Source: Syncephalis fuscata S228 (lineage: Eukaryota > Fungi > Zoopagomycota). From it: a DNA stretch of 64,000 nucleotides. Below, piece by piece: positions 5,201-28,548 of this stretch (positions are counted from its first letter, which is position 1; the number at the start of each line of letters is the position of its first letter). The stretch spans positions 124,001-188,000 of the forward strand of contig JAHLTZ010000002.1 of NCBI GenBank assembly GCA_025786725.1, written 5' to 3'. The position numbers and the translations under genes are program-made. The notes beneath the pieces are model-generated. The model was not told the origin of the DNA, did no database searches, and saw only the letters and a program-made list of their open reading frames with translations.

Positions 5201-6593
5201 ATGGAGGACAGTTCTGTATTAAGCAAGTGTACTCGCAATGAGTTGTCTGGTAAGTGACGTCAATAATTAAGTGGCCAAGCCAGTAGGTGACGTGCCAACG
5301 CGTATTTTTGATCGCCGCTAGCACTGAAGCCATTTAAGTGCAAACCATTGATGGAATTTTAAAAAATAATAGAAATTGCAGGCAGACTCAGATTGGCTGT
5401 TGGGGGACGTAAATCCGAGATTGAGACGCGTATATGGTAAGAAAAAGTGTCGTTTATGTCTAATCATCAATTCTTACACATATTAGGGAGTATTACCAGC
5501 AGACACAAGATCCAGCGTATGTCCGGAAAATCGTCGACAAAATGATTGCTAAGTCACCAAAACACGGCCGACGCCCACGTGTAATTGAACGTGCGCTAGT
5601 ATCTCTTCCGAGGTTATAGAAGAAGTTGTAACAACACCGGCAAGAAGGTGAGCTGATAACACTGAGTTGATTCGTTTCAAAACTAATTCTGTAGCGGACA
5701 GTGATTTGACAAAAGAAGTTTTGACCACACAACGTTCTCCGCAGAATGTACGTCGGACCAAGCTGCTTCCTGTATCAAAGTTATTGCCAGAGACCGATGA
5801 TGTCGGCGAAGATGAGTCGGCTGAAGAGCAAGATACTGTGGCTGAACAAACACCAACACGTAGACGGTCTCTTCTTTCCCAGCAGCTATTGGAGTCTTGG
5901 AAATCAAGTCCAAAGACTGAGCGTCTTTTGCTAAAGCTACGCGAGGTAAAATTTTAATTTAAAATGTATAGCTTTCTACTTATATGTCGCGTTCTATATA
6001 GCAATACTCTAGCGTTTCAGCAATTATACAATCATTGGTAGTGTGCGAACTAATCGTATTGGCACTGACGACCGTCAAATGGGACATTGTAAGTAGAAAG
6101 ATACTAATATTTACAACAACTAATAGTTGCTTATTTGCAGAAAAGTACCGGGCCGGTCCTGTTTTATCTGTCTGGCACAATACATGAATTTCACGGACCA
6201 GTGCCAGATTTCTCACTATTTGCACGATTCGATACCTTTTGGTATCCGCTAATTGGATGGCTAATTGGCTTTGTTATTTTGCCAGCTCTTCCAGCGCTTG
6301 TAGTCCACATCGGCCAAACATCAATTCAAACCCGACGCGGAAGTCGCCGCATTAGTAGTGCTAGTGCTCGTGAAGGAGCATTCAGCTTATTCCAGTGTGG
6401 AGATTACAGCGTCAATGTTATTACTTGGTCGGCCGCTCGATTGGCGTGTATCTATATACTGCGCGGTATTTCGCCACACGTAGCTCAGTGGCCATATGCC
6501 GTCTATGCACATTTATCGCAAGAATTGCTTGTTGTAACAGGCACAGCGGGTCTATTGTTTACAATGGTTGAAATGCTTTCTAAGCAATCATAG
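5201..6593 (+). CDS. Gtt3-like nuclear-periphery membrane protein with N-terminal SAP/HeH-like motif (multi-exon)
   Basis: MEDSSVLSKCTRNELS..RLRLAVGGRKSEIETRIWEYY, a TP/SP-rich spacer, then C-terminal TM segments FWYPLIGWLIGFVILP, VNVITWSAARLACIYIL, TGTAGLLFTMVE. Introns include 5648..5701. One apparent frameshift near 5595. Confidence 0.55.
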
Positions 6594-7498
6594 TTTTTTA
6601 TTACTGACAATCATTAAAGAGATAAGCCAACAGCATGCAGATAAATACTTTAAAAGACTGTGCATAATCCGCCAATTATTATAATTATTTATTATGGTCT
6701 AAATAAACCATATAATGATGTGTTACAAGATGTGCAAATGTGCTATCGGTTGAATGATTAGATAAGCTGTCAGCGTTGAATTCAGTAGACTATATTGTAG
6801 TGTTTTGACTTTTATGTAATAATACATGATTGTCTAGCTTACAGTGGTGTTTAAATATCAATGTAAACATGGAATAAAATAGTATTATGTACAGCGTTTA
6901 ATACACATTGGATAAATGCTTAGTGATGGTCATATACACTATGATCAGTTGAATACTAATATGTATATCGACTATTTTGTCAAGACAATAAAATATTAAT
7001 AATGCTTAGAAGAAACAGCCGTTGTTTTAAATAGTTAATGCAATGGCCATTATAATTATTCAGTTCATTGCTGGACTATTATATGCTGATTATATATAGT
7101 GTTATACATATAATTTAATACAAAGGATAGGTAGAGCTATAACGTGCGACTTGGAAGATGTAACTAGTTTTTATCATTCATAAGAGATATTGCTATATTG
7201 AATTTAACATTTATCACTTTAGTAGTTGGCCATGATAACCAGTGGATATGGATAACGCTTTATATATTGATGAATAAAGGAAAGGACTAAATAGATTAAA
7301 GACACGAAATTGTAACAGCTTGTTTTACAGCCTGACTTTATGGAATATTAGTCATTTACTGTTTAAATCATACCAAGTAGCATTTACAAGTAAATAGCTA
7401 TACAATATTAGCGCTTAATAAACAAATACATAATACATAAAATATAGCACATAACTAAGACAATTGGATCATAACATACTATGAATTTATTTAATGAA

Positions 7499-8731
7499 TT
7501 ATTGATGAGAATGCCAGTTTGGATTGTTAGTTAAAAGCATTCCTTCCAATGCATCCATAGTGACCTCGTCTGCTATTTCTAAACATCTAGATACATCTAG
7601 CCTGTAAAGCTCGCTCTGAGTCCAACCTGGCCTGTGTATAGCTTTTCCCTTTTTCGCATCTTCATTGTTTTTGAGTTTGCAGAGTATTTCAATTTTTACT
7701 TTCTTAGGAACAAGCCAAAGAATTTTTCTTGAAGTAACTTCATTTAAAACAAAACGCTCCGCCTCTGCTTTTCCATTCTCAAATCCCCATTCTGTTGAAA
7801 TGGGAGTATTAAAATTAAAAAACTGTGGCATATATTTACCATCTTTCTTCTTGGTATGCAAATATCTAGCAATACAATCAATATAAGCATTATTAATAAA
7901 CGCTATACTTACCATCAAAATTCTTGTGGCATACCATCCCACTTTTCTTATAGCATCTAGACCTAATAATAATTTAATATATACATATAAACAATCAAGA
8001 TTTGTACCTGATCCAATATTACGCCATAAATCCAATATCTTTTTCATATCAAGTTGCATTGCACTAGTTGAAAAGTTAGCATTATAGATATTATATGGAA
8101 GTAATACTATTGAATTAGTCATACCTGAGGGGATTCTCAGCAAATTGTTTATATGTCTGTTCACATTGGCCTGGTAAGACATAGCATCTAATTTGTCCAG
8201 AAATTATAAAACCGCCTTTAGGTACAGCAACAGAAAACTTGTTGCTGTTAAATAGTAAAGAATGTGCCTTTAAATCCTGTTGATGATGCTACTTGTTAGT
8301 TTTTGCATATCTATTGCTACATAAAACTTGCCTCATATACTTGAAAAGCATTATTGTTTGGATTTGGATCTGATCCACATGTAAGTGTAATGGGTTGATT
8401 ATGTTGCGTTCCTTTGATATAGTGAACACCTTTAACTTCATATGGATTGTCAGTAAACTGAATATCATATATGGTAAATGGACTTTCTGAGTCGTTGTTT
8501 TTATAACTCATAAATTCTACATAAATACTAAAGTTAGCAAATAACATGGATAAATTGGCGTAGACGTTTACCAATGGGCCTAGGCTCGGGCTCGGGCTTA
8601 GAGTTGAAGGAGCCTGGCATGGCATTAGAAGGCTCGGACCCAAACAAACCTGGTATACCATTAACAGGAGTGACCTGAGTAATTGATACTAGCATGAGAG
8701 CAGTGGTAGCAATAGCAAGAATGGATTTCAT
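7499..8731 (-). CDS. Secreted kinase-fold (pseudokinase-like) protein, copy A
   Basis: Signal peptide MKSILAIATTALMLVSITQVTPVNG. Five short introns including a GC-AG intron at 8331..8277. Kinase-like segment GLDAIRKVGWYA(HKNFD)DICI..PQFFNF. Two 1-nt deletions relative to copy B. Confidence 0.65.
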
Positions 8732-9235
8732 TATAAGTATGGCTTTGTCAAAATTTAGTCGTTAAATAAAAAGTGGTGTTTTCTATTAGACTAGTATGTG
8801 AGGAAAGAGTACGACGTGATGATTAGACAAATAAACATGTTAAAATGCAGATATTTATAGTAAAATACACCGTACGATAGTCAACATATTTACTATGAGG
8901 CTGAACAAATACAATTATGCGCTTCTGAGTAAACAACGTGAAAAGAGCACATGGAATAAATAAGTGACAAATTTCCGACATCTCAATATAGAATTTGAAA
9001 TAAAAATGTTTCGAAAATGCATTCTTATTTCTATCTAAAGAGATTGAATGGCACGACAAACAAAACGGTAACTCATTATAATAATGCCATTTTTACATGA
9101 TTGTTACTCCTGGAACAATGATATCCAAAAAATTTACAGGTTTGTTAGTAAACGCTGTGGACTGAAAACCATCTTTTTTGTTGATACTAATTACAACGCA
9201 GATAGTAATTCAATAGTCTAGATTCAAATATACTA
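8630..9235. repeat. Duplicated promoter + signal-peptide block
   Basis: Near-identical to 24481-25045 in the same orientation, and more diverged and inverted relative to ~19470-20040. Confidence 0.92.
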
Positions 9236-9403
9236 AATGTATATATTATATTATTTTACAGCTTGCTTTCACATAATACTTGTTGTTTGTTATTTAAATT
9301 ATGTTAAATAAAATTGCATTCATGTGACATTATATCATTTTATTACTAGATAAAGCGAAAGACAAAGATAATAAAAAATACTTAATCTTCATTGAAAGTA
9401 AAG

Positions 9404-10720
9404 TTAATTACTCTTTCTTATTTCTGCAGATTCGGCTTCATTGGCTTGATATTCTCGACTGCCAGCTGTTACAACGGCTGCTGCAAGCTGAGATGCCTCT
9501 TCAATGATTCGATCTGTCTCTATACGGGCTCTCAGCCGGTCTTTACCTGACAAATAGTCAAGATCGGTCTCTACGGCTGATTTATCTGCTGCTGAAGTAC
9601 GATAATGTGTTAGATAGCGAGACCGCAACGTATCATCTTCGGCAATGGCAGTTCGCACCAGCTGGATGGCTTGTGTGCGATGCAGAATCATTTCTAATTC
9701 GCCGTTCATTAGACTAACTAGCGCACTTGGATCACTAATCTTTGTGGATCTATATTTGTGACAACAAGAGGACGTGGACGCGCATCCCACCATGTACCGC
9801 ACAATATGGCAAGCAATAGCCAGCATCGGGTCGCGCTAAGGTCGTCATGCAAAAACGGTATAGGCCACACGCCTAATGGATCATTTTTATCTTTATCAGC
9901 GACAGAGAAGGCAATCCATTCAACAGCAACACCGATGAGTAGTGCCCAGCCGACGTAGAATCTTGCTCGTATTTGCCGGCGTCGCTGCTCTTTAGCTGCA
10001 ACCATAAATAAAGCTTCGTTGATTCCCGAATCGTTGTATCATGATTGACAGCGGTAACTGTTGAAGAGGCAGATTTAAGACGGGGAGCGGCAAGGAAGAG
10101 GTCGCTAGTCCGACAACAATGGCTACAATAAAGTATTCCCAAGCAATTGATGGTACAAGGTAAAAGACGTAGTCAACCAAGCTTTGGCAATTATCGCCAC
10201 ATTGTGTGAATGCTCGTTCACCGAATGTGCAGTAATAGCCACGCTGCTCATCGTGTCGCAGTTTCTCCCAGAGTTCAAGTAAACGAAGGCCCTGACTATC
10301 ATTGCGCTTATTGACAATATTTGTTACATCCTCCATGGTCACTAGATAGTGGCCGTAGTGATTGGATAAACGTTCACGTATTGCATTTCGAAATCGAAAA
10401 TTAGGCACATTACGTGGCAGATCCAATTCGTAGAAAATATTGGGCGATGATACATATATATCGTAAATCTTCCATACGATCATACCAAGTAGTAGCCAAT
10501 TAGCAAGGCGGGCTTGCCATGTCATTGGTGCTATTTTAGACGATAGATTGGCATTGTTATTAGTATTGTTGTCATTGCTGCTATTGCTATTGCTGCTGCT
10601 GCTACTACTACTACTACTACTGAATTGCGCCTTTATATATCTGAATATTGTGGGTGCCAGTAAAAAGAAAATAATCTGGCCCCAAGTGGTATTTAAAAAG
10701 TTAAATATAGCGACGAGCAT
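9404..10720 (-). CDS. Conserved fungal multi-pass membrane protein with degenerate J-domain-like region; two apparent frameshifts
   Basis: SPNIFYELDLPRN..LWEKLRHDEQRGYYCTFGERAFTQC..CQSLVDY pattern. Three overlapping ORFs join by 1-nt indels at ~10005 and ~9727. Confidence 0.6.
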
Positions 10721-13700
10721 ATTGATAAAACAAATATTAAAAGAACAAAATACCACTCAAAGTTAAATGGTGCAAAAGGCGGCACATATGAGGATAAAAG
10801 GCGTGGCGACAAAAAAGGAAAGTATAATTATTAAATAATGAGTAGTCTTGATGTCAAATGCTATTTATTATTGTTTGGCTACTAAATAATAATACGTAGC
10901 TAATGATTTATCTAGTGTTCTGCAATTGCATTAACAGAAATAATAAAGCAAACAACTAAATTATTGAATACAATTCAAATAACCAAATGAAACGCTACAC
11001 TTATCAACAAGCCCATTGTCAATATCTCTATGCTTTCATGTTTTGCTTACGTAGCTATAAAAATTCTCCATAGCTCCTCTATAATAAGTAATATACAATA
11101 ATTCTATCTATTGCATCCCAATTCAATGTTCATTTTATGGTAATGCGTCTATCTAGAATAATAGCCAGTATTGGCTAATCATTAGTCTAGTTCATATCAT
11201 TGCAATATGCTTGCATATTAGGCTTTTTGTCGTTGATTTGATCAGTTAAAACTTACTGCATGCTGTAAAGTTATAATAATTGGCTTTAATAAAATTATAG
11301 ACATACTAGAAAATCTAGCTGCCAGTAATAACCCATAAGCATAAAACAAAGATAGAGTTATTTATTCACTTGCATTCTACAGCTGTATGTTTTATAGATC
11401 TTTACGTTATTTAAATATTTATACAAATGCAAACATTATAGACTTATTATGTTGTGGCGCATCGCTACTTGTCCATATTGTTTTCTTGTCAGTGTATATA
11501 CAACCGAAAAACACAGTGTTTAAAAATAGAACAATTTGCTGCTGTTATGTTAGTAGACTAGTGAGAATATATATAGAATTCAACAGCCATAAATTATGGT
11601 TTTGAAGTTTTGCCTTAATGCATTATAAATAAAATTATAATCATAATCACTAATAAGATGTAGTTTGGATCAATAACAACTTAATGGCAGTAAATACATT
11701 ACACGAATCACAGGAAACAAAAGCTTAATATGATAAATATAGGCAAACCATTTTGATAGCTACTATGAGAACTATTTGTTATTTCTGTTTTTTTGTGTAA
11801 TTACACTAAGCGTTAAATTACTAAATTGTAGTGGTAATTTAAAGCAAAGATCCCGGAATAGCATTATATAAAGGACTAATGTAACCAAGTTGTTTTATTA
11901 TAATTGTTATGTGTTATCATTTACTTGTTTGAAAAGTGTTTATATTCATTAATAACAAAGCTAGATTCAACAAATAATTTAAATTAATCATTTTTAATAA
12001 TATAAAATATTATGTCGTAAAAATATTTTATTAAATTTAGTTAATAAATGTCAGGGTTTAAAGACTTAAATTGAAAATTAAGAAGAAATAAAGCACAATA
12101 CACACTACTAGTATAATAACAACAGTAGAAACAAATGAGATAATTAACTAACAATTGTTATTATTACTAAAATGAATGTTTAATGTAGCTGTACCGAATG
12201 TAGCTAATTGTAATAGATCCGTAAGATACGCGTGTATAATATTATCATTATAGTATAGATTGTAATGATATATCTTGTTGTCGTTTGATATGATATGTCG
12301 CAACAGAAATGATAAATGGAGAAGAAATAGTATGACATTCCAGATAGCAAAATGTTGGAATGTAGAAAAAGTATTTTATTTAAAAACAAAACAGCATACT
12401 TCAGCTGAAGATAAAAGACATATCTCAGACAAATACAAAGAAGCACAGCTCAGCTAAAGTAAAAAGACACACGTTTAACGTTGATGTAATATCAACAAAT
12501 CGTACAGTACATTAAGACAAGCAGCTATTGCCAGGACAAGTCGATCGCTCAACTAGGCAAACTACTTATTACTATAAGTGGCATGCTAATACAAATGTAG
12601 CCACCAAACGGCTTTGGGAATGCCGCAGCTCTCATTCCCTGACTTGTTGGCTTTATATTACAAGGATCGTCATATTACTTATTGTGATACACCAATTATA
12701 CACCGTGTCAAATCTTGGGGGCTACACAAGGCGTGATTTCTTGTTTTGGCAACACGTTTGAATTAGATGATTGGTTCCTGGGCTTTGCTCGAATTGTAAC
12801 GAATGACTGCATACCAATAGCGCTGCATTGTTACCACCAAGTCCATAGACGGTAAAGGCGGCACGCTGCCATTGCCACTGCCATTGTTACCACTACACGC
12901 TGCAATTTATCGGTAGTCTAGACTAAACATTAGCCATGCCAGATAATTATGCACGATAACCAACATGTATGCATTGTCGTTGACATTTATGACGAAATGA
13001 TGTTGTAACTTATCAAGGTCCTTTGTCGTGCCACAGACGATCACACTATGCGCATAAGGAGATCTCCATGACGTAAATAGATCCTCGTTATTTGTGCTAA
13101 CTGAAACAGATACAGTTAGTAGACGAAATAAACAGAGGGCTGCTAGTTTTACACCCACCACACGTGCAGGAGTGCAAAAGCAAAAACTAGACGACTTTTT
13201 GAAATTTGTGACAAAAAACTAGACTGCTTACTTGCTTGGCAACCTGTTTACATGTTAGATCGTCATTGCTTAGCATGCTGAGCATTGCCGTCGCCTTATT
13301 ATTGTGGCCACAACAGCACAACCGCCACATTGAATGTTGTTTTTTATTGTTGTTCATTACTTTGTGTTGTCGTATCCCTTTCATTTCTCTTCCCCTTTAT
13401 CAGCTCAATTATCCGTTTGTTCAATGCTTTTGCCTTGAGTAAGATTGCATTGTACACTTTTATACTCCGCTTGCTCTCGTCCAACAGCCTCCTTTCCCAC
13501 TCCGATCTTCCATAACATTGTACTCCCGTCCATACTTGTTCTAATTCTAACACACCCAAACAGATCTTTTGTCAACACGCCTTTTCCATTTGTTTTCTCA
13601 TTCTCTCGCTCGATTATTCACCTTGGCCGTAAATTTATAAACGGCGACTCCTTTTGACTTTCCGCTCGGTATGAGCGGTGTCGGTTCATTTTGACGCTTT

Positions 13701-15967
13701 TTTACTATAACTACCACAGATCTCCTTCATCTCATTTTCCATCTCCTTCTATTTTACACCGTCATCGCATCCTATTATTCTTGTTGCCTTTATACCGACT
13801 ATTTCCATTCTTCTGCATTTCGATCCTTCTGCTGGGCAACACATTGCGATACACACGCGCACCCTATTGATTCCGAATTCTCCTCGCTTCCTTCGTCTCT
13901 ATTATTCGCGTGTGCACATTGATTATATACAAGGGCATTCCTCCTCTACCTACCACAACTGATCGTCAAGGCCATTTATTAGCCTTGAGAGATAACTATA
14001 TCCAACTAACTGTCTTTGCCACGTGTGGTCGCGTAAATCATTTCAGTGCAAAGCCCAGTTTTCTCCGACTCGTGCGTCCTGAACTATCAAATTTCTAACT
14101 ATCTGCAAGACCACGCGTTGCGTGCTACAGACATTCACAGACATTCTTCCTTACACTCTTTCGCCACCATCTAATCTTTCTTATCCCTGTTCTCATCCTC
14201 CTCCTCTCCTCCTTCTACTTCTCCACACTACCACTATAATTCTAAACACCTTTTAATAGATTGCCAATCATCCCTTTTTGTCAACGCTAATTCTATCCGT
14301 CCGTTCGCCCTCCGTACGTTTATTTGCCCCTTCATTAACTATTAACTTTTGTTCTTCACTCTGTTTGCTTGACGTTTCTGCCATCCTAATCACTACTACT
14401 CTGCTATAGACGAACCATAGCGTTCTTTCCACTCTACGTTAACTATTTTTTACTATCACAACTGAACGGTTATTACTGTTTGCCATTTTTCCGTTACGCT
14501 CCATTTCATAGACTTTGAATAGGTAAGTGAACCCATTGCTTAAATTACGCAATCCATTCGTATATCATCTACGGCAATAGAGCTGTTTGTAGAGCACGTG
14601 TCTACATATTTGTGTGTGTGAAAGAAATAGTTTGGCTGGTTATTCGGTAAAGGGTGACTTGCGCAATCCTCTTGCAAGTTGCTTGGCAGTATGTGGATCA
14701 GCAACCGTGCTAAGCCGTGCAGCACTAATCAGAGCAGTGTGCAGTCGCGTGATATGGCAAATCCTTCCAGTTTGGTGACTATTTTTATTTTGTAATGGTT
14801 CAGTGTTTTAAGCCACTGTAAATGAATGGTGGCCTTTGCTTTCAAGGGATCATAGGCAGTATGAGTGCACACACACACCACACACATATGCACACAGACA
14901 TACACGCATTATCATGCAATTTAGATGTCGAGTTGAACGGCATTTCTGCGTGCTTGGCAGCCGCAGTTTATTCGTTTTGATCACACGGAGAACCTGTTCC
15001 GCGTGGAATCCAAATATCGAAATAGGTGGATCAGCTCAGCCTTTTCCGCAAACGCTCGTCTATTTGCAGGTTGTGTGGTGTGTGGTGTGTGGGTGGCCAG
15101 GCCCTCGAATGACCTCGACCATTATTGAACTAGTGTCTATATCAATTTACTTTTGTTAATTGAATATGATTAATTTAATAATTTCTCTCTGTGTGTGCGT
15201 GTGTGTTTAAATAGTTGATATCTACACTTTATTATAACTGTTTGAAAATACACGTATTTATTGGGCACTGGAACACTTTGAGTTATTCATGGGTGTTTAT
15301 GATGGTAATATGACGTGGGCGAAGCCACACATGCCTTGTACACTGCCTTGTGCCTATACAGTCGTGACTGTTTTAAGTCATTCAGCACCATTGAGCTGAA
15401 TAATTAGCATTTCCAGTTTTGCATGACTGCAGCATCCAGACATTAAAACGCTCCTGCATTATCTCAAGAAAGGCCGGGGCTCGTGAGTGCAAACGCGCAC
15501 GTGCTATCTAGTTTACAATTCCCAGACTACTACCTGTAACTAGATCGAATTAGTTTTCTATATAAACCGATGTTCGCAGCGGCAATCTATAGCCCACGAA
15601 TACGAAGCTTTACACTCCACCTTAGCTTCTCCTTTCGTTTTGCCTTCATTTGTGTTCGCCTTATTTTCCTGTGACTTGTTTTTATTTCAGAATCAACGCT
15701 GAGTACGACTCGGCTTTTATTTTGTAGTTCGTTGTTTCAGTTACGCCATTGCCCTTGCTTAGTTAGTGCGAGAGCTATGTAGCTGTTGAATGACATTATT
15801 ATTCCTTTAACTGTGTTTTTTCTTTTCTTTTGATATTATTTACTAACTGTTTTCTTTATTCAATTACATTGTACTACGCACGCTATCGCAGGTCGATCAT
15901 CGTACCGTCTTGGTTAATTATATTGGTGATAATTTGATTATTCAACAACATCGAATTTCTTGTAATC

Positions 15968-16940
15968 ATGGATTTGCACCGCACTAGTTTCCCGTTGTCC
16001 TCGGTGGTCCGCAGCAATGTTGAGAAGCGTGGCTGGATCTCCAAATGGAGTACCAGTGGATTGCGTCGCGGATGGAAGAAGCGATATGTTGTTCTAAAGG
16101 GCAACCATCTTTCTTCTTTAAAAACCTTAAAGATGACGAGCCAGTAGTTAGTGTCATCAATCTTGAGATTACCGCAGTGTATGGCAGGACAATAACTGCA
16201 AAAAATCGCGTCACTCATTCCGACTATCGCCAACAACTGCTCCAGCCGACCTTAATAAGCTAAGTATTATGACAGGTCGCAGTAAAGAGCTGCAATTCTT
16301 CGCGGACAACGCCGAAGACATGCGCTCTTGGATCCAGCATATTCAGCGCAAATTGCCTCGCGCTGAAGGCAATATTTTGGACAGTGTGCTGCGTCGTCTT
16401 GATTATAACAAATATTCGCGTCCACGTAGCAGCAGCGACCTGCGTTCGCATTCATCGCGCGACTCTATCAGCAGCGGTAATGGTGGTGAAGCACCATCAT
16501 TGTCGAGTGGCGGTAGCAGCGGCGAGGAGACACCTCACGGCAGCGTTACCTCCGGTACACCTGTAGGTAGTCCAATGGTCATGGCCGCTTCAATGGAGTT
16601 GGCCGTAAAGCCTATGACTGCTATTGAGCGCCGCCGTATCCGTCGCACCACAATGAGTCCCACCATTGAAAATAAGCTATCACGCCGTCGCAGCTCCCCC
16701 TTGTTGCCTGGTGGGTCACAACGTCGTATGATGCGTCTTGATCTTGACCGTTTGCCAATGCCTACTTTCGAGGTGACCACGCCATCGATGACTACACCAA
16801 CATTTGGCGTTCTGTCCCCCGCACCATCATCACCAGCCGCAATTGATTTTGATGGCTATGTATTGTCACTACGTGCTAGTCTGCCTGATACGGAAGAAGC
16901 TGCATCTCATGATGCACTATCCCATATGGAATTCATGTAA
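15968..16940 (+). CDS. PH-domain protein with S/P/R-rich C-terminus (two apparent -1 frameshifts)
   Basis: VEKRGWISKWSTSGLRRGWKKRYVVLKGNHL / FFFKNLKDDEP..VINL / DYRSV..SRHSFRL..ELQFFADNAEDMRSWIQHIQ is a canonical PH pattern. Frames shift at ~16110 and ~16168. Confidence 0.8.
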
Positions 16941-18760
16941 TCACCATCACTATTGATACAAAGACGTGCTGCGCAGTGCGCCGATCATCAATGCTATTCA
17001 ACAACAATAACCTTTAGCGCTATTTTTCCTTCTACAACAACAACTCTAGTAACACAACACCATCTACTAAAAGCAATCACTTGCATATAGTTATCATCGA
17101 ATCATTAGTTGAAACATATTGGCCGCCAATATCCGGTCTTTGCTTTCACTTTATTCGCATCAAGCTCGTTTCTCTTTCCTTATTCGTACTATTCTCCTTT
17201 TACCGTATCCACTTATCATTCCTATTCCGTTGTTTTTCTAGCTGTTACTCGTTCGACATATTATATTTCGACGTTATGTTTCCTTATGCCATTCCACTAT
17301 CTGCATATATTTTGCTTATGTGCACTTATCCATATGTGCTTTGATTTGTACCGCGTTTCCGTTTACTTAATTTACCATTGACCAAGTGTTATATACGGTG
17401 AATGTCAATTCATACGTAGTGTAGTATTTAGTTTATCGGTAATTGTTTTTTGTTTTCATTAAGCCGTTTGTTCTTTTTTCGCATTCTATTACTATTATTA
17501 CCAGTGATGATGGATTTGGTTATTTGTTTAAACCAACCAATTTTCCAAATTTAATGGACTTATTCTTGTGTGCAGTTTAGTGAAACGGCCATACTGATAT
17601 ACAATCATTGGACGTATTCACCGCACTTGAATAGCATTTCTCAAATGCATGCTGAGTCTTGTACGCGTACGCTAGTATGTCCACAGTTAAGTTTTTCACA
17701 ACTGTGCTGCACTATCCATGGCAGCGGATTCCCAGTATAGAAATGAAATTTTTGGCTGACGGACTACTTGCCGCTCGACTCGGCATTGTCCATAACTACT
17801 AATATTATTACTACTACTATTATTATTATCATGCTCCTCTATTATATTATCATTATTATCACCGCAATAGATGCCGATTCAGTTCTGTCGGTATTGTTTT
17901 ATTGATTCGGTAGCCGTTGTGTTTACACTTCAACTGGTTTTAATTTGCGATTACTTAAACGACTCTTGTTCAACATATACCATCATCTATCCACGACCTA
18001 CCTGATTCATCACTAGATCCGCGACACAACTGTACACCATTTACTGGTGTCTACTCGACAACACCACTCGAGACTATACAATAATTGTCAACAGCAGCAA
18101 CAATAACAGCAACAACTGACCTAAAAGGATATAGTTTTTGATAACAGTCTATACTGCACAACTACATCCACATAATCATTGTTACTTGACCTTGATAGAT
18201 CAATAGCAATTTGTATTGCCAAGTATTACTACCTTTATTCAAGTAGCAACTGAGCTATCATCATCGCCATACTAGTTCCCGTCACCGATGTTAGCTCTCT
18301 TCCTCTCTCTCCCTCTTTCAACATACTCAACACTCAGCTTGATTAGCGCCACCATTATCATACATATAACTTTTGTTTTCGATTTACTTTATGACACATT
18401 ACGTATGGCAACTATCGTCAACGTATCGTTTAGCTTTTATTTTTCGTAACAGTCTATTACTGATGGATGTTTGGTTTTTGTTTGTTCATACACCATCAAC
18501 TGCTTTGCGTAAAGGCTTTCCAACGAGGAGACTTATTAATACGCACAGATATACATATAGGTGTTACGGTTTTACGCCTTTGATGAACTACCTTAATGCA
18601 CAATCCATTATTTGTTTTTCGCTTTACGTACTGCCGTGTGGACTCACCAGTTTGTTATCACCGCAGCCTATGGATACCTGATTTACCTTACTTTTTAATG
18701 TTTATCAGTGTACAACTCTGTGAGTTGTAATTTCGAGCTAAAAGTGGTATATTTGCTATT

Positions 18761-18843
18761 GCCGCCGCCGCCGCCGCCGCTTGAATATGTCTGTTGGTTT
18801 ATTATCCTTCTCAGCATGTACTGCCGCCGCCGCCGCCGCCGCT
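18761..18843. repeat. Two (GCC)n microsatellites
   Basis: GCC runs at 18761-18780 and ~18823-18842 in otherwise AT-rich non-coding DNA. Confidence 0.9.
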
Positions 18844-19965
18844 ATAGCTTAGCCACTTTAAATCAGCGACAAATTACCTAGGTGCTTATGTCCTGATAAC
18901 GCATCTATTAATTCTTTTATTCCGCACCATAACTATACACGCTAGAGTTGACAAGCCCCGCTGGGCGGGCTCTAGACAAATCCACGCTGTGGCGTGGTAT
19001 GATTGTTCATAGTATTGACAATTATCCTCCTACACTTTGTTCAATTACTTTGGATTGCTTTACAATTGACATTGATGTTTTTGGTTTGCCTCTTCATTCC
19101 TTGGCATCATCAGTTGTAGTTTGTCCCTTTTGATAAACCACAGCCTTGTATGGCAATTATTAGTATTTAGGTTGTTTATTTTGTGTCCAACAAGTGTAAT
19201 ATTAAATGTTTAACTCGATATTATTGTATTGTATTTGTTGCTAATACAAATATCTAATTGCAATCTATGTCATAAGGTCTTTTCTATGCTATGATTCATA
19301 TCTTTTAACATGTAATAATAAATCGCAGCCTCGTAAATACACAATAATTTATATGTTAGCAGATAGTATATAGAACCAAGTATATTGAAGTTCACAAATA
19401 GTATGTAAAACTATTTTGTTCTATAGAAACATTAAATTGATGGCTAATGCAATGTGCATTATTGAACATCGAATCTAGACTATTGAATTTCTATCTGAGT
19501 TGTAATTAGTGCCAGCAAAAGATTATCCCGATCCGTGGTATTTACTGACAAATCTAAATTTCTTTTTGGCTATCGATGCTTGACAAATAGGAATTGCACA
19601 GAAATGGTATTGCTACAATAAGCCATATGCTGTCCGCTTTATACTACTTAACGTCTATAAATAAACATGGGAATGCAGCTTTAAAAGATTTGTATTTCCA
19701 AATTTTGTATTAAACTATTAAAGGTTGTTTTTTAGTTTATTCCATGTGCTCTTTTCACGATTTCCTACTCAGACGCGTGTATATTGTATTTATCCAGTTT
19801 CGTGGTAAACATGTCGACTAGTTTACCACGTATTTTGCTATAAATACCTGTATTTCTAGTACATTTATTTGTCTATCCATCATATTATACTTTTTCTTAC
19901 GTGTAGCTTTATAGAAAGTACGACATTTTATTTAACGATTCAACCTTAACAAAGCCATACTTGCG

Positions 19966-21178
19966 ATGAATCCATTCTTGCTGTTACTGCCGCTGCTCTC
20001 ATGCTAGTATCGGTTACTCAGGTCACCCTTGTTAATGGCACACCAGGTTTAATCAAATCAAAGCTTAAGCCTGAGCCCAAGCCCGAGTCTGATATTAGGT
20101 TTATTCGTAAGCATCTACTCCAAGCTATCCACATTATTTACTAACATCATTATCTATGTAGAATTTATGGGTATTAAAAACAACGATCCAATTAATCCAT
20201 TTAATATACATGGTATCCAGTTTACAGGCATTCCATACGAAGTTAGAGGTGTTCACTATGTCAAAGGAAGGCAGCATAAACAACCTATTACACTTGCGTG
20301 TGGGCCAGATCCAAATCCAAGAAATAGTGCTTTTCAAGTATACGAGGCAAGTTTTATATAGCAATAACTATACCATAATTAAAAAGCATCACCATCAACA
20401 GGATTTAATGGCACATTCTTCATTATTTAACAGCGACAAGTTTTCTGTTGCTGTGCCTAAAGGCAGTTTTATAATTCCTGGACAAATTAGATGTTATGCT
20501 TTACCAGGCCAATGTGAACAGACATATGACAACTTTGCCGAAAATCCCCTCAGGTATGACTAATTCAATAGTATTACTTCCATATAATATCTATAATGCT
20601 AACTTTTAATTAATGTAACTTAAAGCGATATGGACAAGCTATTAAGTCTGTGGCAGAATATTGGATCAGGTACACGTTTTTGTTGTTTATATGATATATA
20701 CTAAATCGTTATTAGGTCTAGATGCTATAGGAAAAGTGGGATGGTATGCCCACAAGAATTTTGATGGTAAGTATGAACTTTATTAATAATATTTGTATTA
20801 ATTGAATTGCTAGATATTTGCATCACCAAAAGCGAAAATGATAAATATATACCACAGTTTTTTAGCTTTGATAATGCCGTTTCAGTAAAAAAAGAGCTTG
20901 ATTACGAAACAGTGAAAATACGTTCCGATATAAGCTATTTTATTTTAGAAAAAATATTTCGACTTGTTCCTGACAAAGTAAAAGTCAAGATAATCTGCAA
21001 ATTTTTAGATAAGACATACACGAGAAGAAGGAGAGTTGTATACAGTTCGGGCTGGCTTTATTTTGAACTTAAGAGTCTAGGAATAGATGAATGCTTAGAA
21101 ACAGCAGATGAAAACACTATAGATGCACTGGAAGGAATGCTTTTAACTAATAATCCAAGCTGGCATTCTCATCAATAA
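19966..21178 (+). CDS. Secreted kinase-fold (pseudokinase-like) protein, copy B (possible pseudogene)
   Basis: Paralogue of copy A with the same intron positions (GC-AG 20347..20401). GLDAIGKVGWYAHKNFDDICIT..PQFFSFDNA, ending LEGMLLTNNPSWHSHQ. 1-nt deletion just after the ATG, and the intron-3 acceptor AG appears missing. Confidence 0.6.
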
Positions 21179-21658
21179 TTCATTAAATAAATTCATAGTA
21201 TTTTATGATTCAATTTTTATTATTAATATATTTTATGTATTATGTATTTAGTTATTAAATATTTATTTATTCATCTATTATATTATATAACTTCTATTTC
21301 AGTATACGGCGATGTTCAGGAGAGTGCTTCAAAGGAGTAGCTGTATTGACTATTATCATGATTGTATACATTTTGAAATAAATACATTAAAAACAAAAGT
21401 GAGTGCAAAAGAGCTTCATTTATTCAACACACCATTTGTTACACCTACTCTCATCCGCACGGTTGTCCATTTGTTTCCTCTTCTTCTCCTCCTGTTCCTA
21501 CTGCTCTTACTAACAGCTAGTGGGTTGATCTACGATTAAAGTAAATATTACTTAGCGTGGCTTGCTTGCAGATCTATCGACAAGGAACAAATCGCGCCAA
21601 ATTTAGCGTTATCACTTTATTTCTACCTGTATACTTTTTAATTCCACTTGATCTTGAC

Positions 21659-23338
21659 ATGTCGGCGCCTACAGCCGCGACTATTGCTAGTGACGATAAT
21701 GTCGCTATGACTGCATCTCCTTTGGCGGGGACGAATAAGGTAGGCAAATAGTTAACATTTGGCTTATTGACCAGGTAGAACTATAACTTATCAAATGCTA
21801 GAGACGGTCAATGGCCAGTTCACGTCACGAATCTCTAGGTAGTGAGGGTAAGCTATAGACGGCATTAATAATCTACAGTGTTTATTGACAAGCCAATGCA
21901 GAACTGAAGTTTAAACGAAAATATCGCGATCTGAAGAAGAAAGTACGCACTATTGAAGAGGTAGGCTTTTAAGCTGGCTATTACAAATAGTTATTTATTT
22001 ATCTACAGGAAACAGACAAATTAGTTTCAAAGTTACGGCATTTAAAACGCGAAACTAATCGATTACGATTGAGAGAAGGTATTTTTATTGCCACATTGAT
22101 GGTGCAATTGTCACTAATATTTCGTATAATGAACTAGCTTTTTGCATGAGAAATTAGAACAAGATGGTGTATTTGAAGAACCTATATCGTCAGGTTCAGA
22201 TGACGAGGAAATACTAATGGCACTTGCCACGGCCACTGGTCTGGCATCTAGCTATAATGCAAACTACAACGGTGCTATGGTAAATAGCATGTTATTTTAT
22301 TTTCCTTTATTTAAATTGAATTGTTCTTTGTTTCTATTTATCTAGATGGGACCTGGTGGTCATACAGGCTTGGGAGGCAGCAATGAATCATTTGCCGAGG
22401 GTGTAGCTCATCAACACCAGCAAGGCGGAGGGGGCCGTGGCGGTAGACGGGGCGGTGCAGCCACAGGCGGATCTGACCGTACACCGAATCGACGAGGAAG
22501 ACGCGGCAACAACGATGGTACTCCTACTTCACGCCGTGGTGGCGGTGGCGGTGGCGGAGGAGGCGGCGGCGGCAATGCCAATCCCTTTTTTGCTTTTTGT
22601 CAGAAAGAACGTGCTGCAGTACGGGCCATTATGCCGGATGCCACCAACGGAGAGATTACACGTGAGCTGGGCCAGCGATGGAGGGCGTTGACCGATGAAG
22701 AACGGCAGGTAAGTATTTTTTAATAAAATATAATAATGGTTAGTAATATAGATATATAGGTGTTTTACGAACTGGTTGAGAAACAACGTGCAGAACGTGC
22801 TGCTGCCGCTGAAGCTGCTGCTACCTTGGCAGCCAGTAACATTGAAAACAGCAATGATAATAATGCTAATAGCATTGCTGGTGTCGTAGCCGAACCGAAT
22901 AATACAGTAGCCTCTAATGCCAGTAATGGCAATGCAGGAAATCCAGTATCTATGCCCAACACAAGTGCTACTGCTAATACAATTGCCAGCAACACAGCAG
23001 ATTCTACAAAAAGTGCTACTGTCACCGCAGGAACTAACGTGGAACACCAGGGAAATAGTCATGGTATAGCTGATGGACCAACGGGCGATGTCGACTATCT
23101 AGATCCGTTAGCTTGGAGTGAAGATACTCATACATCATCAACAGAAACCGACTCTGACCAAGAAGATGCTCATCTACCGTTGGATGAAGAAGAGGACGAG
23201 GAGGTTGAAGAGTTAGAAGAGCTGGATGAAGAAGAGGAACATGGTAGTTCAATGGTACCAGGCAATCAGGCACATTGTATGACAAATAACAATGGCAATA
23301 ATGCTGATACGACAATGATGTCGGTGGATGTGGACTAG
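21659..23338 (+). CDS. HMG-box protein, NHP10/INO80-subunit-like (multi-exon)
   Basis: Coiled coil KFKRKYRDLKKKVRTIEEETDKLVSKLRHLKRETNRLRL, HMG box NPFFAFCQKERAAVRAIMPDATNGEITRELGQRWRALTDEERQVFYE, Gly-rich linker and acidic tail. Confidence 0.75.
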
Positions 23339-23539
23339 AATATTTGAAAATTTATTTCAATTCATTCGTTTTGTTTTAAAATAATCACACCTATTATTAC
23401 ACACCTAAACACTAGCTTTTTATAAACTGTAATAGCCATTTTACAAATAAATAGCGATATAATATTAGTAGCTAATAAACAAATACATGGCACATAAAAT
23501 ATATAAATAGTTGAAATAATTGGGCTATATATGCCATGA

Positions 23540-24579
23540 CTTTTTAATAAACTATTGGCCATTGGTAATACTAGTTAATTACTCGTTGACTTCAATAGCA
23601 TGTTATTGGTTGCAAGTGCAATATCATCTTCATAGAAAGCGCATTATTCTTTCTACGGTATATTGATTTAGATAATTACTGGACATTGGTACTTCTTTGT
23701 TGACACAGCATTATTGAAGTCTTTAAAATATACCTGGTATCCAGATGCATTAGGATTTCCATTGATGCAAATATTTAACAATTTTATTAATATAACCACC
23801 AACAACAGCATACTCCCACCATCAAATCCCTGTGAACAGCCCATCCCTCATCTAGTAGAGACTTTAAACCTACTAATTGCTTAGCTCTAGTATATAAATA
23901 ATAAAATCATATACCTTTTGCGAGTTGCCTGAACATATCCCTTGTATGTTTTGCTCATTTTCAGGAATTTTAATTGGAGTATCAACATATTTTCCCGTTA
24001 GATGATTTAGTTTCGTTGCAGTAGTGGGGACATATCTGTCCTGGATTTCTTCAGCAAGAATTTAAATGTCTTTACATTCATGATACAGCATGACATAACA
24101 TACTTTCCTTTGATTATCAAGCATCTTTCAGGTATAGCAACTAAGAATCATTGTTTTTAGATAATCCTGGTTTTCTACTAAATTTATTGATAATGATTAT
24201 TGGTTTCTGCATGTCTATTGCTATATATAACTTACCTTGTATACTTGAATGGCGCTATTTCTTGCATTTAAGACTGATTCACATGCAAGTGTAATGAATT
24301 GGTTATGTTGTGTTCCTTTGACATAGTGAACACCATCAACGCTGCGTGGAGTGTTTGTAAATCAGATATTATATACGTTAAATGGATTTTCTTTATTGTT
24401 GTTTGATACCCATAAATTCTATATGAATAATACAGTTAGTAAATAGCATGGACAACTTGGAGTAGACGCTTACTAATGGGCTCGGACCCAAACAAACCTG
24501 GTATACCATTAACAGGAGTGACCTGAGTAATTGATACTAGCATGAGAGCAGTGGTAGCAATAGCAAGAATGTATTTTAT
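23540..24579 (-). pseudogene. Secreted kinase-fold family copy C, degraded
   Basis: Start codon ATG>ATA at 24579, with internal stops and frameshifts. Retains GLKSLLDEGWAVHRD (23834-23826), DICIN and YFKDFNNA (23721-23716). 3' boundary approximate. Confidence 0.7.
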
Positions 24580-25640
24580 TGTAAGTATGGCTTTGTCAAA
24601 ATTTAGTCGTTAAATAAAAAGTGGTGTTTTCTATTAGACTAGTATGTGAGGAAAGAGTACGACGTGATGATTAGACAAATAAACATGTTAAAATGCAGAT
24701 ATTTATAGTAAAAATACACCGTACGATAGTCAACATATTTACTATGAGGCTGAACAAATACAATTATGCGCTTCTGAGTAAACAACGTGAAAAGAGCACA
24801 TGGAATAAATAAGCGACAAATTTCCGACATCTCAATATAGAATTTGAAATAAAATGTTTCGAAAATGCTTCTTATTTCTATCTAAAGAGATTGAATGGCA
24901 CGACAAACAAAACGGTAACTCATTATAATAATGCCATTTTTACATGATTGTTACTCCTGGAACAATGATATCCAAAAAATTTACAGGTTTGTTAGTAAAC
25001 GCTGTGGACTGAAAACCATCTTTTTGTTGATACTAATTACAACTCATAGAAATGCTGTAAATTTAAATACAAATTTCTAATTGTATAAATTGTAATAATC
25101 AATAGTTTAATAATTATTTAGACCAAATTAAATTATTACATGTTATTTGTGCACTTCAATATACCTAATTCTTTACAATATTTACTATCGTATAAATCAA
25201 TGCCATTATTAATTAATCACCAATACTCGCTTCATGAACTGATAAATCGATTGTTAATTGCCAATAATCAATGTAAAAGTAGTGTTTATTAAGTAGTAAA
25301 TGACAATAAATTATATTACAAAAATAATAAAGTAATACGTTAAACTACATATAGAAACCATAACATATAATTAAATTATTTCATTAACACAGATATGAAT
25401 CATAATGTAGAAATTTTTTATAATATAGATTACAACTAGACATTTGTATTAATAACAAATACAATGCAGTAATATCAAGTTGTGCTCAATATCCACACTG
25501 GGTAATGACTATATCGCAGTGTGATACATGTCAATATAACAGGAATGGATTACTATTTTTTCTTTTTTTTCTACATTCTTTGCCATTCTCTTTATTCATT
25601 CATCAATTCTATTACTACTGGCATTGTTATTAAAGCTACT

Positions 25641-28327
25641 ATGGGCAAAGTAAAACAGCAAAGACGTAGCGCGCGTGCCCGTTTGAACCCCACTCGCATA
25701 TCAGACCCGTCGACACTGCGTCATGGCACAATCCGAGCAGTGAACGAGAAGCCTGAAGGTGTACTACCGGTCATTGATAAAATATCTGCCGTTGACGCTA
25801 GTGAGCGTGCCTGGGCGTGTGCCTGTGTCTCTAATCTTGTAGGACAAGATCACCGCACACGCAAATTACTGTTAAGTCGCGGTCTAGTCGACAAGCTAGT
25901 CGAACGTTTAACTGATTCGAAGTTGGCGGTATCGGTTGAAGCAGTTGGTACATTACGGTAATTATCAAATTAAACATTGTACAGTACAACATAGGCTAAT
26001 ACCAGGTACTTATTACTAGTAATTTAACTGTATTAGGTGGATATAAAGTATGCGCTGACATGTTTAGCAAGAATATATTAACGGCAATGCAACGCCTTGT
26101 TCAATTGGTAAAGCTACTTTTACAACCAATGTCACAGTATAGCTTAACGTCAATAATATAATATGAATAGACACTGGTAACGGCGAACGAAGTATTAGAG
26201 GATATCAAACCAGCAGACGCTGATGCTGTAGCACGGCATCGTGCAGTTTGGTCGTTGGCCGAAAATCTAATTTGTATTTATTGGAGTTTAGCGTAAGTAA
26301 TCTAGCATGCTGAGTGCGATTAATATACTAATGGCGTATAATGATAGCGAAACATCGCCTCGAATCCTTAAAAGTGTTACCAAACCTGAAATATTATCAT
26401 TTGTTCTACGGTTCCTAGAATTAAATACCAAGGTTCCAGCATCGTTATCCATTATTGCAGGTAGATAGATTAATGATTATAATTGATAAATAGTAACATA
26501 TACTATCTAGCCCAGTGTCTACACACCATTACAGAAGAAAATAGAGATGCATTGGCCTATTTTCGCTCTGCGCCCGATATTGGCCAACGACTATTAAATG
26601 CGCTTCCTACAGGCCAAATACCCGAGGATAGAACTGTATTGGGTGTACTCATTGCTGGTATATTGCGTAATATACGCCGAACATTACCAAAGAGGCCCGA
26701 TATAGATACAACAGCCTCATTGAATCACTCAATTGCCCCTATTCTTTTATCATTTTTAGATTGGGATGTTCAAGGTGCAGCTCTTCATATGGCTCAACTG
26801 GCACCCGAAGTGTTAGTAAGTAGTCTACAACATATCAATAGACTGTAGCTAATATTGTATTAGAAAAAACATCAAGAACAAAATGGACTACACGATCGTA
26901 CAGTAGCATCGGCTAACGAGGTAAATATTATAGTAACATTGAATATACAGTATATAGACCTAATAATGGCAATAGACGCAATTAAATGCCATGGAAGATA
27001 GACTGGCTGCTATGCAACTATGTTTGGAAATACTTGCCAATATGGCATCAGAAGATACTATAGATGGTAATAATATAGCTTATGTATGGTTTATTAATAC
27101 AGTAATTAATCATAATAATGATGATTTAGATGAACCAGAAGAAGAGAAAGAAGATGAATGGGAGGATTTAGACGAAGAAGAAGATGAATTACAAGCAGAG
27201 ATTGAAGAAGTTACCAATGGACACGCTAATGGCAATGTAGAAGAAGAAGAAGAAGACGGTGAAGAAGATATGGCCATGATCGATGCAGCTACAGGACAGC
27301 ATGTTCATGCACTAGAAGAGGCAGAGACACGTGTTGGCATTATGCTTAATCGTGACTCTGGTCGATTCTTTGCACAAAGTCTATTGCCATTACTGGTGCG
27401 ACTAGCCGAACCATGTTTAGTTGCAGGTCAAGTATCTGCAATTGCATTTACATATACACGACGTGAAGCACCAGCTATTGCCGAATTGGCCATACTACAT
27501 GCACGTGCCTTGGCCTGTCTTAACAACTATTTAGTGTTGGCAGCTGAACGATCCACTCGTGGGTGGTTTAATGACCAGCTGGCCGATGCCCAACAGTTAT
27601 GGCACTGGCTATTAGACAATGTGGCAGCCCGTGCTCAAATACCAACTACATCAACCGCCACTAATACAAACGAAGAAAGTGATAATAATGAACAAAGTAA
27701 TATACGCGAGGAAGTATTAGAAAGTGCATTGGACTGTTTATGGTCAGTGGCCCGTGGTCTAGGCACCCACAATATAGTAAGTACCATTAAAACATACTAC
27801 AAAGCAACAACATTCAACTTACATGTAATGATGATAGCCGGCTACAGAAACACAAATACATGCACTTATCAATGTGGCACAGGGCCAAACCAGTGCCTCT
27901 GACCATTTAAGAGCAACTTGTATTGGTACACTAGGTGTTATAGCTCAACGACGACCAGGCTATGTTGAAATGAATGGGGTAGGCAGTAATCATTTATATA
28001 AACGACTAAACTTACACAATTCGCTAGATAATTGGCCATTTATTAATGACACAACTTACTAATCTGCCTCAGACCCCGTCTGAAACGGCAATAGAAGCAT
28101 TGAATGCACTTTATGATATTTATGACGATGCAGCACACGACTACGATGCACCCGTATTTGTCAAGGGCGGGTATTTAGAGGCACTACGCAATATAGTGCC
28201 AGCTGTACGCCAATTAACAAAGCGTATTGATCGACGACAACAACCGGCACTACGTGAGCGAGCCGAAGAAGCACTAGTCAATCTACGTGCCTTTATTGAC
28301 TATAAAACAGGCGAAACAGCATCCTAG
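25641..28327 (+). CDS. SYO1: Symportin 1 / HEATR3 (ARM/HEAT import adaptor for uL5/uL18)
   Basis: N-terminal MGKVKQQRRSARARLNP, ERAWACACVSNL, VEAVGTLRNL, an acidic loop, and C-terminal EALNALYDIYDD..LRERAEEALVNLRAFIDYK. Confidence 0.88.
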
Positions 28328-28548
28328 ACCTTTATCCGACCATCTTGATAAGATCGGGTCGGTTATGCAAAACCGCTTGGCCAATCAATCAAGACCAATA
28401 AATGATCCAATAAATAGCGCTCTTTTTTGATATAAAACATGTTGACCTCAGCGAGAGTGGACACGTCATTATCGCACTTTTCTCTTCTTGCGTCTCTACT
28501 TGACACATTTGATTGTTCGTTTCTTCTATTAGCGTCGATTATAACAGT

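Follow-up and report, generated by a model that had tools for sequence, protein, structure and literature searches.

Three paralogous genes of the mycoparasitic fungus Syncephalis fuscata as members of a large family of putatively exported, pseudokinase-like proteins

Introduction

The window considered here, that is, the whole stretch of DNA that was analysed, comprises 64,000 nucleotides (bases 124001-188000 of contig C112) of the 29.4-Mb, 371-contig assembly of the fungus Syncephalis fuscata. It contains three paralogous genes, named copies A, B and C, which are discussed here as members of a large family whose proteins are predicted to be exported and to carry a domain that very probably has the protein kinase fold, with the canonical catalytic residues lost. 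People, animals and crops are not among the hosts of Syncephalis, which attacks other fungi. When protein sequences were searched with the long open frame of copy A, three NCBI entries of S. fuscata were matched, all named "hypothetical protein BDF19DRAFT_...". The window also contains a malate dehydrogenase gene whose product shares 100% identity with the S. fuscata protein and 85% with its counterpart in Syncephalis pseudoplumigaleata. Among the public gene models, P0001 corresponds to copy A and P0003 to copy B, while P0002 is a paralogue 30-40 kb upstream. An earlier note on this DNA had spoken of a possibly parasitic fungus, and rightly so, Syncephalis species being obligate mycoparasites according to work cited in a passage of PMC13188720.

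The three copies and the gene structure of copy A

The genes are situated where the earlier note had placed them, at 7499-8731 on the minus strand (copy A), 19966-21178 on the plus strand (copy B) and about 23540-24579 on the minus strand (copy C). They align lengthwise, with a mean column identity of 79% in the DNA alignment and with five introns at corresponding positions, and a reading of the sequence confirms the features that had been ascribed to them, namely, a signal-peptide block, a linker of Pro and Glu, and the motif order. With the last exon of copy A as a query, paralogues were found at E values of 1e-16 to 1e-32, which is far beyond chance similarity.

Contigs of the sequencing run X1 were placed on positions 5500-11400 of the window, that is, on copy A and its neighbours. 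These contigs are derived from RNA, because they skip sequence in the neighbouring genes at GT..AG on the own strand of each gene. Copy A is transcribed and all of its five introns are removed in the spliced contigs, so at least one member of the family has RNA that is both present and spliced. The features of copy A, with the evidence for each in brackets, are as follows.

8572-8731, minus strand: exon 1, with the ATG, the signal peptide MKSILAIATTALMLVSITQV... and the Pro/Glu linker (RNA contig over 8572-8682)
8517-8571, minus strand: intron 1, GT..AG, 55 nucleotides (X1 RNA joint 8516>8572)
8332-8516, minus strand: exon 2, N-lobe beta1-beta3 with the invariant Cys of P-I-T-L-x-C-G (RNA contig 8336-8516, secondary structure of the model, family conservation)
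8277-8331, minus strand: intron 2, non-canonical GC..AG, 55 nucleotides (RNA joint 8275>8331 in two contigs, an ambiguity of 1-3 nucleotides being allowed)
8125-8276, minus strand: exon 3, alphaC, beta4, beta5 (C-Y-V-L-P-G-Q-C) and hinge (sequence, RNA, model, family conservation)
8064-8124, minus strand: intron 3, 61 nucleotides (RNA joint 8063>8125)
8008-8063, minus strand: exon 4, start of alphaE (sequence, RNA)
7963-8007, minus strand: intron 4, 45 nucleotides (RNA joint 7960>8006; the cut shifted by +2 gives GT..AG)
7913-7962, minus strand: exon 5, end of alphaE and the catalytic-loop equivalent G-W-Y-A-H-K-N-F-D (RNA, comparison with copy B; the assembly is one base short)
7866-7912, minus strand: intron 5, 47 nucleotides (X1 loose ends at 7855 and 7913 join exon 5 to exon 6)
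7499-7865, minus strand: exon 6, beta7 (I-C-I), beta8, the DFG equivalent N-F-N-T-P, the variable C-lobe, the conserved tail ...TNNPNWHSHQ and the stop (RNA contig 7527-7855, open reading frame)

In the Pro/Glu linker at 8581, an RNA contig has 6 extra nucleotides corresponding to one more Glu-Pro unit, and this difference is due either to allelic or repeat-length variation or to a collapse in the assembly. In addition, X2 and X3, runs on another sample with the same organism label, contributed small unspliced contigs that match stretches of copy A (7860-8489) with 2-4% differences and with single-base indels of their own; these could represent another strain or a closely related paralogue, for example, that at the P0002 locus.

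Single bases missing from the assembly

The catalytic loop of copy A had been reported as one base short. The base is indeed absent in the assembly, but this is not a real lesion of the gene, since an RNA contig carries the extra base behind position 7927 at full depth and thereby restores G-W-Y-A-H-K-N-F-D; the frameshift of copy A is therefore an error of the assembly. RNA contigs have one further base that the assembly lacks at the start of exon 6 (about 7856). Pseudogenisation of copy A was considered and rejected on this RNA evidence. The same one-base deficit was found in the flanking genes at positions 5593, 7169, 9742, 10032 and 10091, again from RNA contigs at full depth. Throughout positions 5500-10600 the single-base differences between RNA and assembly are always bases missing from the assembly and never surplus ones, they are not restricted to homopolymers, and they occur at a rate of about one per 450 nucleotides of covered transcript. 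Because of this systematic loss, a frameshift that appears in a conserved gene of this genome is to be presumed an assembly error until it is checked.

Several public gene models of the family suffer from the same defect. P0001 keeps intron 5 because the frameshift in the assembly allows the retained intron to leave the frame open, and it should be borne in mind in practice that P0001, P0003, P0007, P0010 and P0023 are distorted by retained introns or truncated starts, as single bases are dropped from the assembly. P0001, P0007, P0010, P0023 and P0145 contain translated introns or fused neighbours, P0145 joining two family members, and the errors in these models probably stem from assembly indels.

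Copies B and C

Copy B has the following structure, in which the junction of exons 2 and 3 was set by analogy to copy A.

19966-21178, plus strand: copy B, whole gene, with exons 19966-20106, 20162-20346, 20402-20553, 20626-20669, 20716-20766 and 20814-21178 (sequence, alignment to copy A)

Exon 1 of copy B is frameshifted in the assembly, one A being missing in the signal-peptide codons (atgaa[a]tcc), and consequently the start of P0003 lies at a Met within the signal peptide. This frameshift is probably the same assembly artefact as that of copy A. P0003 also uses another donor/acceptor pair at 20347-20401, which adds the residues H-H-H-Q-Q and is probably a mis-annotation.

The third copy and the block that it shares with copy A are as follows.

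23540-24579, minus strand: copy C, a pseudogene, the frame of which ends after ...K-D-F-N-N-A-V-S-T-K-K at about 23668 (sequence, alignment)
8631-9178, strand not assigned: 5' block of copy A with promoter, 5' untranslated region and signal peptide, 99-100% identical to 24479-25025 upstream of copy C (repeat search)

Copy C begins with ATA in place of ATG at 24577-24579, its linker is deleted, and its exon 2 has a 2-nucleotide deletion and an in-frame TGA. Furthermore, the acceptor of its intron 5 is AA in place of AG, and the last approximately 100 codons are not recognisable. The region still matches the family profile at an E value of 2e-17. By its sequence copy C is a genuine pseudogene, because several of these lesions are substitutions, which are not the error type of this assembly. 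The 5' tract shared with copy A extends over about 550 bp and includes the ATG-to-ATA change of copy C, and the remainder of the two genes is strongly diverged, which suggests a recent gene conversion or segmental duplication.

Size, distribution and evolution of the family

The earlier note described a family of three copies, which holds for the window but not for the genome. A whole-genome search with P0003 gave 70 exon-level matches and a search with a 17-sequence profile gave 131, and when grouped these matches correspond to about 45-50 loci spread over no fewer than 24 contigs. A group of twelve loci, copies A, B and C among them, is located between 71 and 278 kb of contig C112, that is, within 207 kb. 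The locus pairs on contigs C78/C168, C59/C310 and C101/C149 have identical scores and coordinate patterns; they are likely to be duplicated contigs or haplotigs, so that the number of loci given here may be a slight overestimate.

When 1.84 billion representative proteins were searched exhaustively with HMMER, 18 were obtained at E values of 1e-3 or below, and with their cluster mates and two proteins from a further search with an 18-sequence profile the total is 26, all of them from S. fuscata. This final profile search of proteins gave no link to canonical kinases. No homologue was found in S. pseudoplumigaleata, the genome of which is a fragmented single-cell assembly, although its proteins and those of a metagenome-assembled genome of Piptocephalis are included in the collection searched, and owing to their presence the absence of the family outside S. 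fuscata is informative.

The ratio of nonsynonymous to synonymous substitution rates (dN/dS) was calculated pairwise between copies A and B, exon by exon, by the method of Nei and Gojobori.

Exon 2: dN/dS 0.44
Exon 3: dN/dS 0.40
Exon 6, whole: dN/dS 0.60
Exon 6, 18 codons around the DFG equivalent: dN/dS 0.95
Exon 6, variable C-lobe segment: dN/dS 0.64
Exon 6, conserved tail: dN/dS 0.37

The variable C-lobe segment is by far the most diverged, its dS being 0.87 as against 0.22-0.37 elsewhere, and ratios below 1 in combination with this high dS point to relaxed constraint and a mosaic history. The supposition that the family is rapidly evolving is moderately supported: no homologue was detected in S. 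pseudoplumigaleata, but dN/dS is 0.4-0.6 and never exceeds 1.

Kinase fold

A profile of three sequences gave only chance matches in the PDB. When the family was aligned to HIPK2 with HMMER, the C-Y-v-l-P of exon 3 came to lie opposite beta5 and the hinge. The evidence for the fold comes mainly from structure models of two members. The AlphaFold2 model of P0003 (copy B), made with 17 paralogues, has a predicted local distance difference test score (pLDDT) of 77.2 and a predicted template modelling score (pTM) of 0.75. Foldseek found at least 500 matches for it in the PDB at E values of 1e-3 or below, the top 50 of which are all kinase domains; VIA gave Z scores of 12-13.7 over about 200 residues, spanning residues 35-286; and in a fold search of the ESM Atlas all rows were Pkinase, with template modelling (TM) scores of 0.53-0.59. 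The model of P0004, a member that is 45% identical and has a different C-terminal tail, has a pLDDT of 73.9. It was compared, independently of Foldseek, with 48,161 representative chains, and here too the top 50 were all protein kinases, with 245 chains at a Z score of 8 or more and the ULK4 pseudokinase as the best match (Z 13.2). Moreover, the named neighbours of P0003 in language-model features all belong to the kinase clan (Kdo, Pkinase, RIO1 and ABC1, at 0.92-0.94).

The order of secondary-structure elements assigned by DSSP fits the bilobal layout of kinases in both models: the N-lobe has five strands and alphaC, and past the hinge there follows a helical C-lobe that contains alphaE, the catalytic loop and beta7-beta8. 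Both models match protein kinases only, and the domain of the family is, on these models, very probably a protein kinase fold.

Active-site positions and cysteines

The positions of the active site were examined by column analysis of 22 paralogues, with the residue numbers of P0003. The HMMER alignment to HIPK2, the hhalign alignment to S. fuscata kinases and the DSSP spacing (beta6 174-175, beta7 183-187) give the same ungapped beta6-beta7 register, in which W-Y-A-H-K-N-F-D-D-I-C-I lies on I-H-R-D-L-K-P-E-N-I-L-I. The first reading of the sequence had equated H-K-N, or H-R-D in copy C, with the HRD motif and had thus concluded that the catalytic Asp is changed to Asn. This is two residues off and was rejected, because the three methods agree that Y-A-H is opposite HRD. 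The position of the HRD Asp is occupied by His in most members and by Asn, Gln or Tyr in some, and the sole members with Asp there are P0019 and P0146, a divergent pair. Five residues after the HRD Asp, the place of the kinase Asn is mostly taken by Asp or Asn, and Glu or Gly also occur.

N-F-[ND]-N-A aligns with D-F-G-x-A. The Asp of DFG is lost in copies A and B as had been proposed, being Asn in copy A and most members and Ser in copy B; other members have Lys, Gly or Tyr, and only pseudogene C has Asp. The literal VHRD and KDFNNA that had been pointed out in copy C are present as letters, but they are partly coincidental, HRD probably so, in a dead pseudogene. The Gly-rich loop GxGxxG is present in none of the members, the beta1-beta2 segment reading I-Q-F-T-x-x-P-Y-E-V-K-G-V-H-Y, and no member has a Lys or Arg at the position of the beta3 Lys of VAIK, where beta3 reads P-I-T-L-A-C-G. 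Many members have an Asp in alphaC (D-L), for which the beta3 partner is lacking. On the models, copies A and B would thus be pseudokinases by definition, having a kinase fold in which VAIK, HRD and DFG are all lost, and the family as a whole appears to be catalytically inactive.

The invariant residues are Cys 82, 130, 137 and 184 (in beta3, beta5, the hinge and beta7, respectively), together with Tyr131, Gly173 and Trp174; Pro134 is near-invariant. The four cysteines probably form two disulfides, for which the predicted pairs are C82-C130 and C137-C184.

Export

The signal peptide that had been proposed for the copies was recovered by heuristics in copy A and at least 12 paralogues. In copy A the Kyte-Doolittle hydropathy (KD) is 2.54 over 12 residues behind a positive n-region. 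Common to copy A and the paralogues are an n-region that is short and positive, a core of some 14 hydrophobic residues (KD of the h-region over 12 residues, 2.25-2.83) and, ahead of the Pro-rich linker, small residues. In the correctly modelled members there is neither a later hydrophobic segment nor a KDEL or HDEL tail for retention in the endoplasmic reticulum, and the mature part contains an even number of cysteines, 4 or 6. The proteins of the family are therefore presumably exported.

Interpretation and alternative explanations

The preferred reading, to which a probability of roughly 60% is given, is that copies A and B are working members and copy C a dead member of a large S. fuscata family of exported, inactive, kinase-fold binding proteins. 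A family protein would be soluble and about 270-310 residues long, with a cleavable signal peptide, a short Pro/Glu linker and one compact bilobal domain of the kinase fold. This domain would have lost the residues for nucleotide binding and phosphotransfer and gained the four invariant cysteines, the two disulfides of which may stabilise the protein outside the cell, and it would act by binding, not by catalysis. The proteins would be exported at the interface between parasite and host, where the variable surface of the C-lobe, likely to be the recognition surface, may bind molecules of the host (Mucorales or Mortierellales) or of the interface, in the manner of the secreted pseudokinase effectors of other parasites. 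A role as host effectors is suggested because an interface with the host would fit the parasitic way of life as well as the clustered loci, the pseudogenes, the tracts of conversion and the restriction to one species.

Several observations weigh against this reading or parts of it. Pfam gave no kinase or other credible family at E values up to 10 for the exon pieces, the three public models or 17 members. The 17-sequence profile brought HIPK2 and HIPK3 to the top of the PDB matches in the expected motif register, at weak E values of 0.02-0.1, and hhalign against four intronless S. fuscata kinases aligned the same 53 columns in the same register with a probability of 2%, which is so low that this register was set aside as an independent proof of the fold. 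Because the statistics of the sequence searches are weak, the fold is deduced from models for which the alignment was shallow, with 17-18 paralogues of a single species. In the segment of the catalytic loop the pLDDT is about 71, and at this lower confidence the mapping of residues is probable, not certain, and could be off. Polar residues persist at 177, 179 and 182, and a Lys in beta2 is fairly conserved, so that an atypical catalysis is conceivable. Positive selection is not supported by pairwise dN/dS, which is never above 1. Export is a heuristic prediction from sequence features, and the RNA evidence concerns copy A.

Of the other explanations, the one that survives best is that the proteins are secreted or wall-associated and serve the fungus itself, in the cell wall, in adhesion, in the development of spores or merosporangia, or in self/non-self recognition. 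Copy A is transcribed in an RNA sample that may be axenic, disulfide-rich extracellular proteins are often structural or adhesive, and no host-translocation motif was identified in the family. Such a role is nevertheless unlikely, as a clustered expansion that is restricted to one species and includes pseudogenes, tracts of gene conversion and a surface segment of very high variability is more typical of proteins at a host interface than of housekeeping proteins of the wall.

Secondly, the proteins may be secreted enzymes of an atypical kind that are active, as kinases or as some other nucleotide-dependent transferase, and that use non-canonical residues, for example, the beta2 Lys as in WNK kinases, the trio of loop His, Asp/Asn and Asp/Asn, and an Asn in place of the DFG Asp. 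Residues 177 (His), 179 (Asp/Asn) and 182 (Asp/Asn), the beta2 Lys in Y-I-K-G and the alphaC Asp in D-L are fairly conserved, and active kinases without a Gly loop exist, such as WNG1 of Toxoplasma according to a passage of PMC6442604. No catalytic position is invariant, however: residue 177 varies among His, Asn, Gln, Tyr and Asp and the DFG-Asp position among Asn, Ser, Lys, Gly and Tyr, whereas the residues that are invariant are cysteines and the hydrophobic core, which is the pattern of a structural scaffold. This explanation is accordingly considered improbable for the family.

Thirdly, it is hardly credible that the kinase fold is an artefact of modelling and that the domain has some other or novel fold. 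The alignment has little depth and is drawn from a single species, there is no match in Pfam and the probability from hhalign is only 2%, but the two models share one topology at 45% identity, every structural search returns kinases only, and the language-model features and the top PDB sequence matches are also kinases in a consistent register. Finally, copy C is clearly dead and copies A and B are frameshifted in the assembly, as they would be if the window copies were non-functional, decaying relics of a dying family, but this is very improbable too, because the frameshifts of copy A are absent from its correctly spliced RNA, flanking housekeeping genes have the same single-base deficits, and dN/dS between A and B is below 1 in all exons.

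Returning to the exported binding proteins, a bolder version, which is tentative and would not be expected to hold in full, is that the kinase fold has been turned into a disulfide-locked, nucleotide-free extracellular scaffold whose dozens of hypervariable copies are the main weapon of S. fuscata against other fungi. At the haustorial interface they might, for example, engage kinases of the host, substrates of kinases or sensors of wall integrity, as decoys or as inhibitors, and in a minority of the family some unconventional catalysis might be retained. If true, this would be a fungal and fungus-directed counterpart of the ROP5-type pseudokinase arsenal of apicomplexan parasites.

To our knowledge, almost nothing is known about the means by which obligate mycoparasites among the Zoopagomycota gain control of the fungi that they parasitise, and in the papers searched no description of secreted kinase-fold proteins in Syncephalis or the Zoopagomycota was found. 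The family, which is not seen by standard domain searches, provides candidates for studies of expression, localisation and binding, and it would extend the strategy of secreted pseudokinases from apicomplexan parasites to fungi.

Relation to known systems

The pseudokinases of the ROP5/ROPK group of Toxoplasma act by binding host proteins and not by catalysis, as stated in passages of PMC3493473 and PMC3682881. The S. fuscata family resembles them in having a predicted signal peptide, a predicted kinase fold with the catalytic residues lost, and a lineage-specific, tandemly clustered and polymorphic expansion. By analogy this would be a likeness of logic and not of ancestry; no sequence homology to the ROPK proteins was found, the profile search of 1.84 billion proteins having returned S. 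fuscata only. Unlike ROP5/ROPK, the present family belongs to a fungus that parasitises fungi, its domain is smaller (about 250 residues), it has lost all of the canonical motifs and not one or two of them, and it has four conserved cysteines.

The best structural matches, at Z scores of 12-13.7 over about 200 residues, are the pseudokinase domains of ULK4, RNase L and other cellular proteins, together with Pim1, PKR and IRE1. In contrast to the S. fuscata family, these proteins are cytosolic and have no signal peptide, most of them retain nucleotide binding, and their identity to the S. fuscata models is 6-13%.

Fam20C, VLK/PKDCC and Toxoplasma WNG1 are similar to what is predicted for the family in that a kinase fold operates in the secretory pathway or outside the cell and contains disulfides. 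A further likeness is the lack of the Gly loop in WNG1, which is mentioned in PMC6442604, in the passage cited above. None of the three was among the top structural or sequence matches of the family. Fam20C and VLK/PKDCC, and WNG1 as well, are active enzymes that keep the catalytic Asp and the metal-binding residues, unlike the S. fuscata proteins.

The FIKK kinases of Plasmodium and the CRN8-type effectors of oomycetes are likewise families of exported kinase-domain proteins that have been expanded in parasites. They differ from the present family in being mostly catalytically active and in having other export signals, and no homology between them and the S. fuscata family was detected.

Neighbouring genes

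Ordinary genes surround the three copies in the window, all of the following on the plus strand.

22142-23338, plus strand: HMG-box protein rich in Gly, Asn and Glu
26991-27902, plus strand: SYO1-like TPR protein
28513-29427, plus strand: NAD-malate dehydrogenase
38962-39990, plus strand: phenylalanyl-tRNA synthetase, class II core
50553-51638, plus strand: fasciclin-domain protein

The gene of the HMG-box protein sits between copies B and C.

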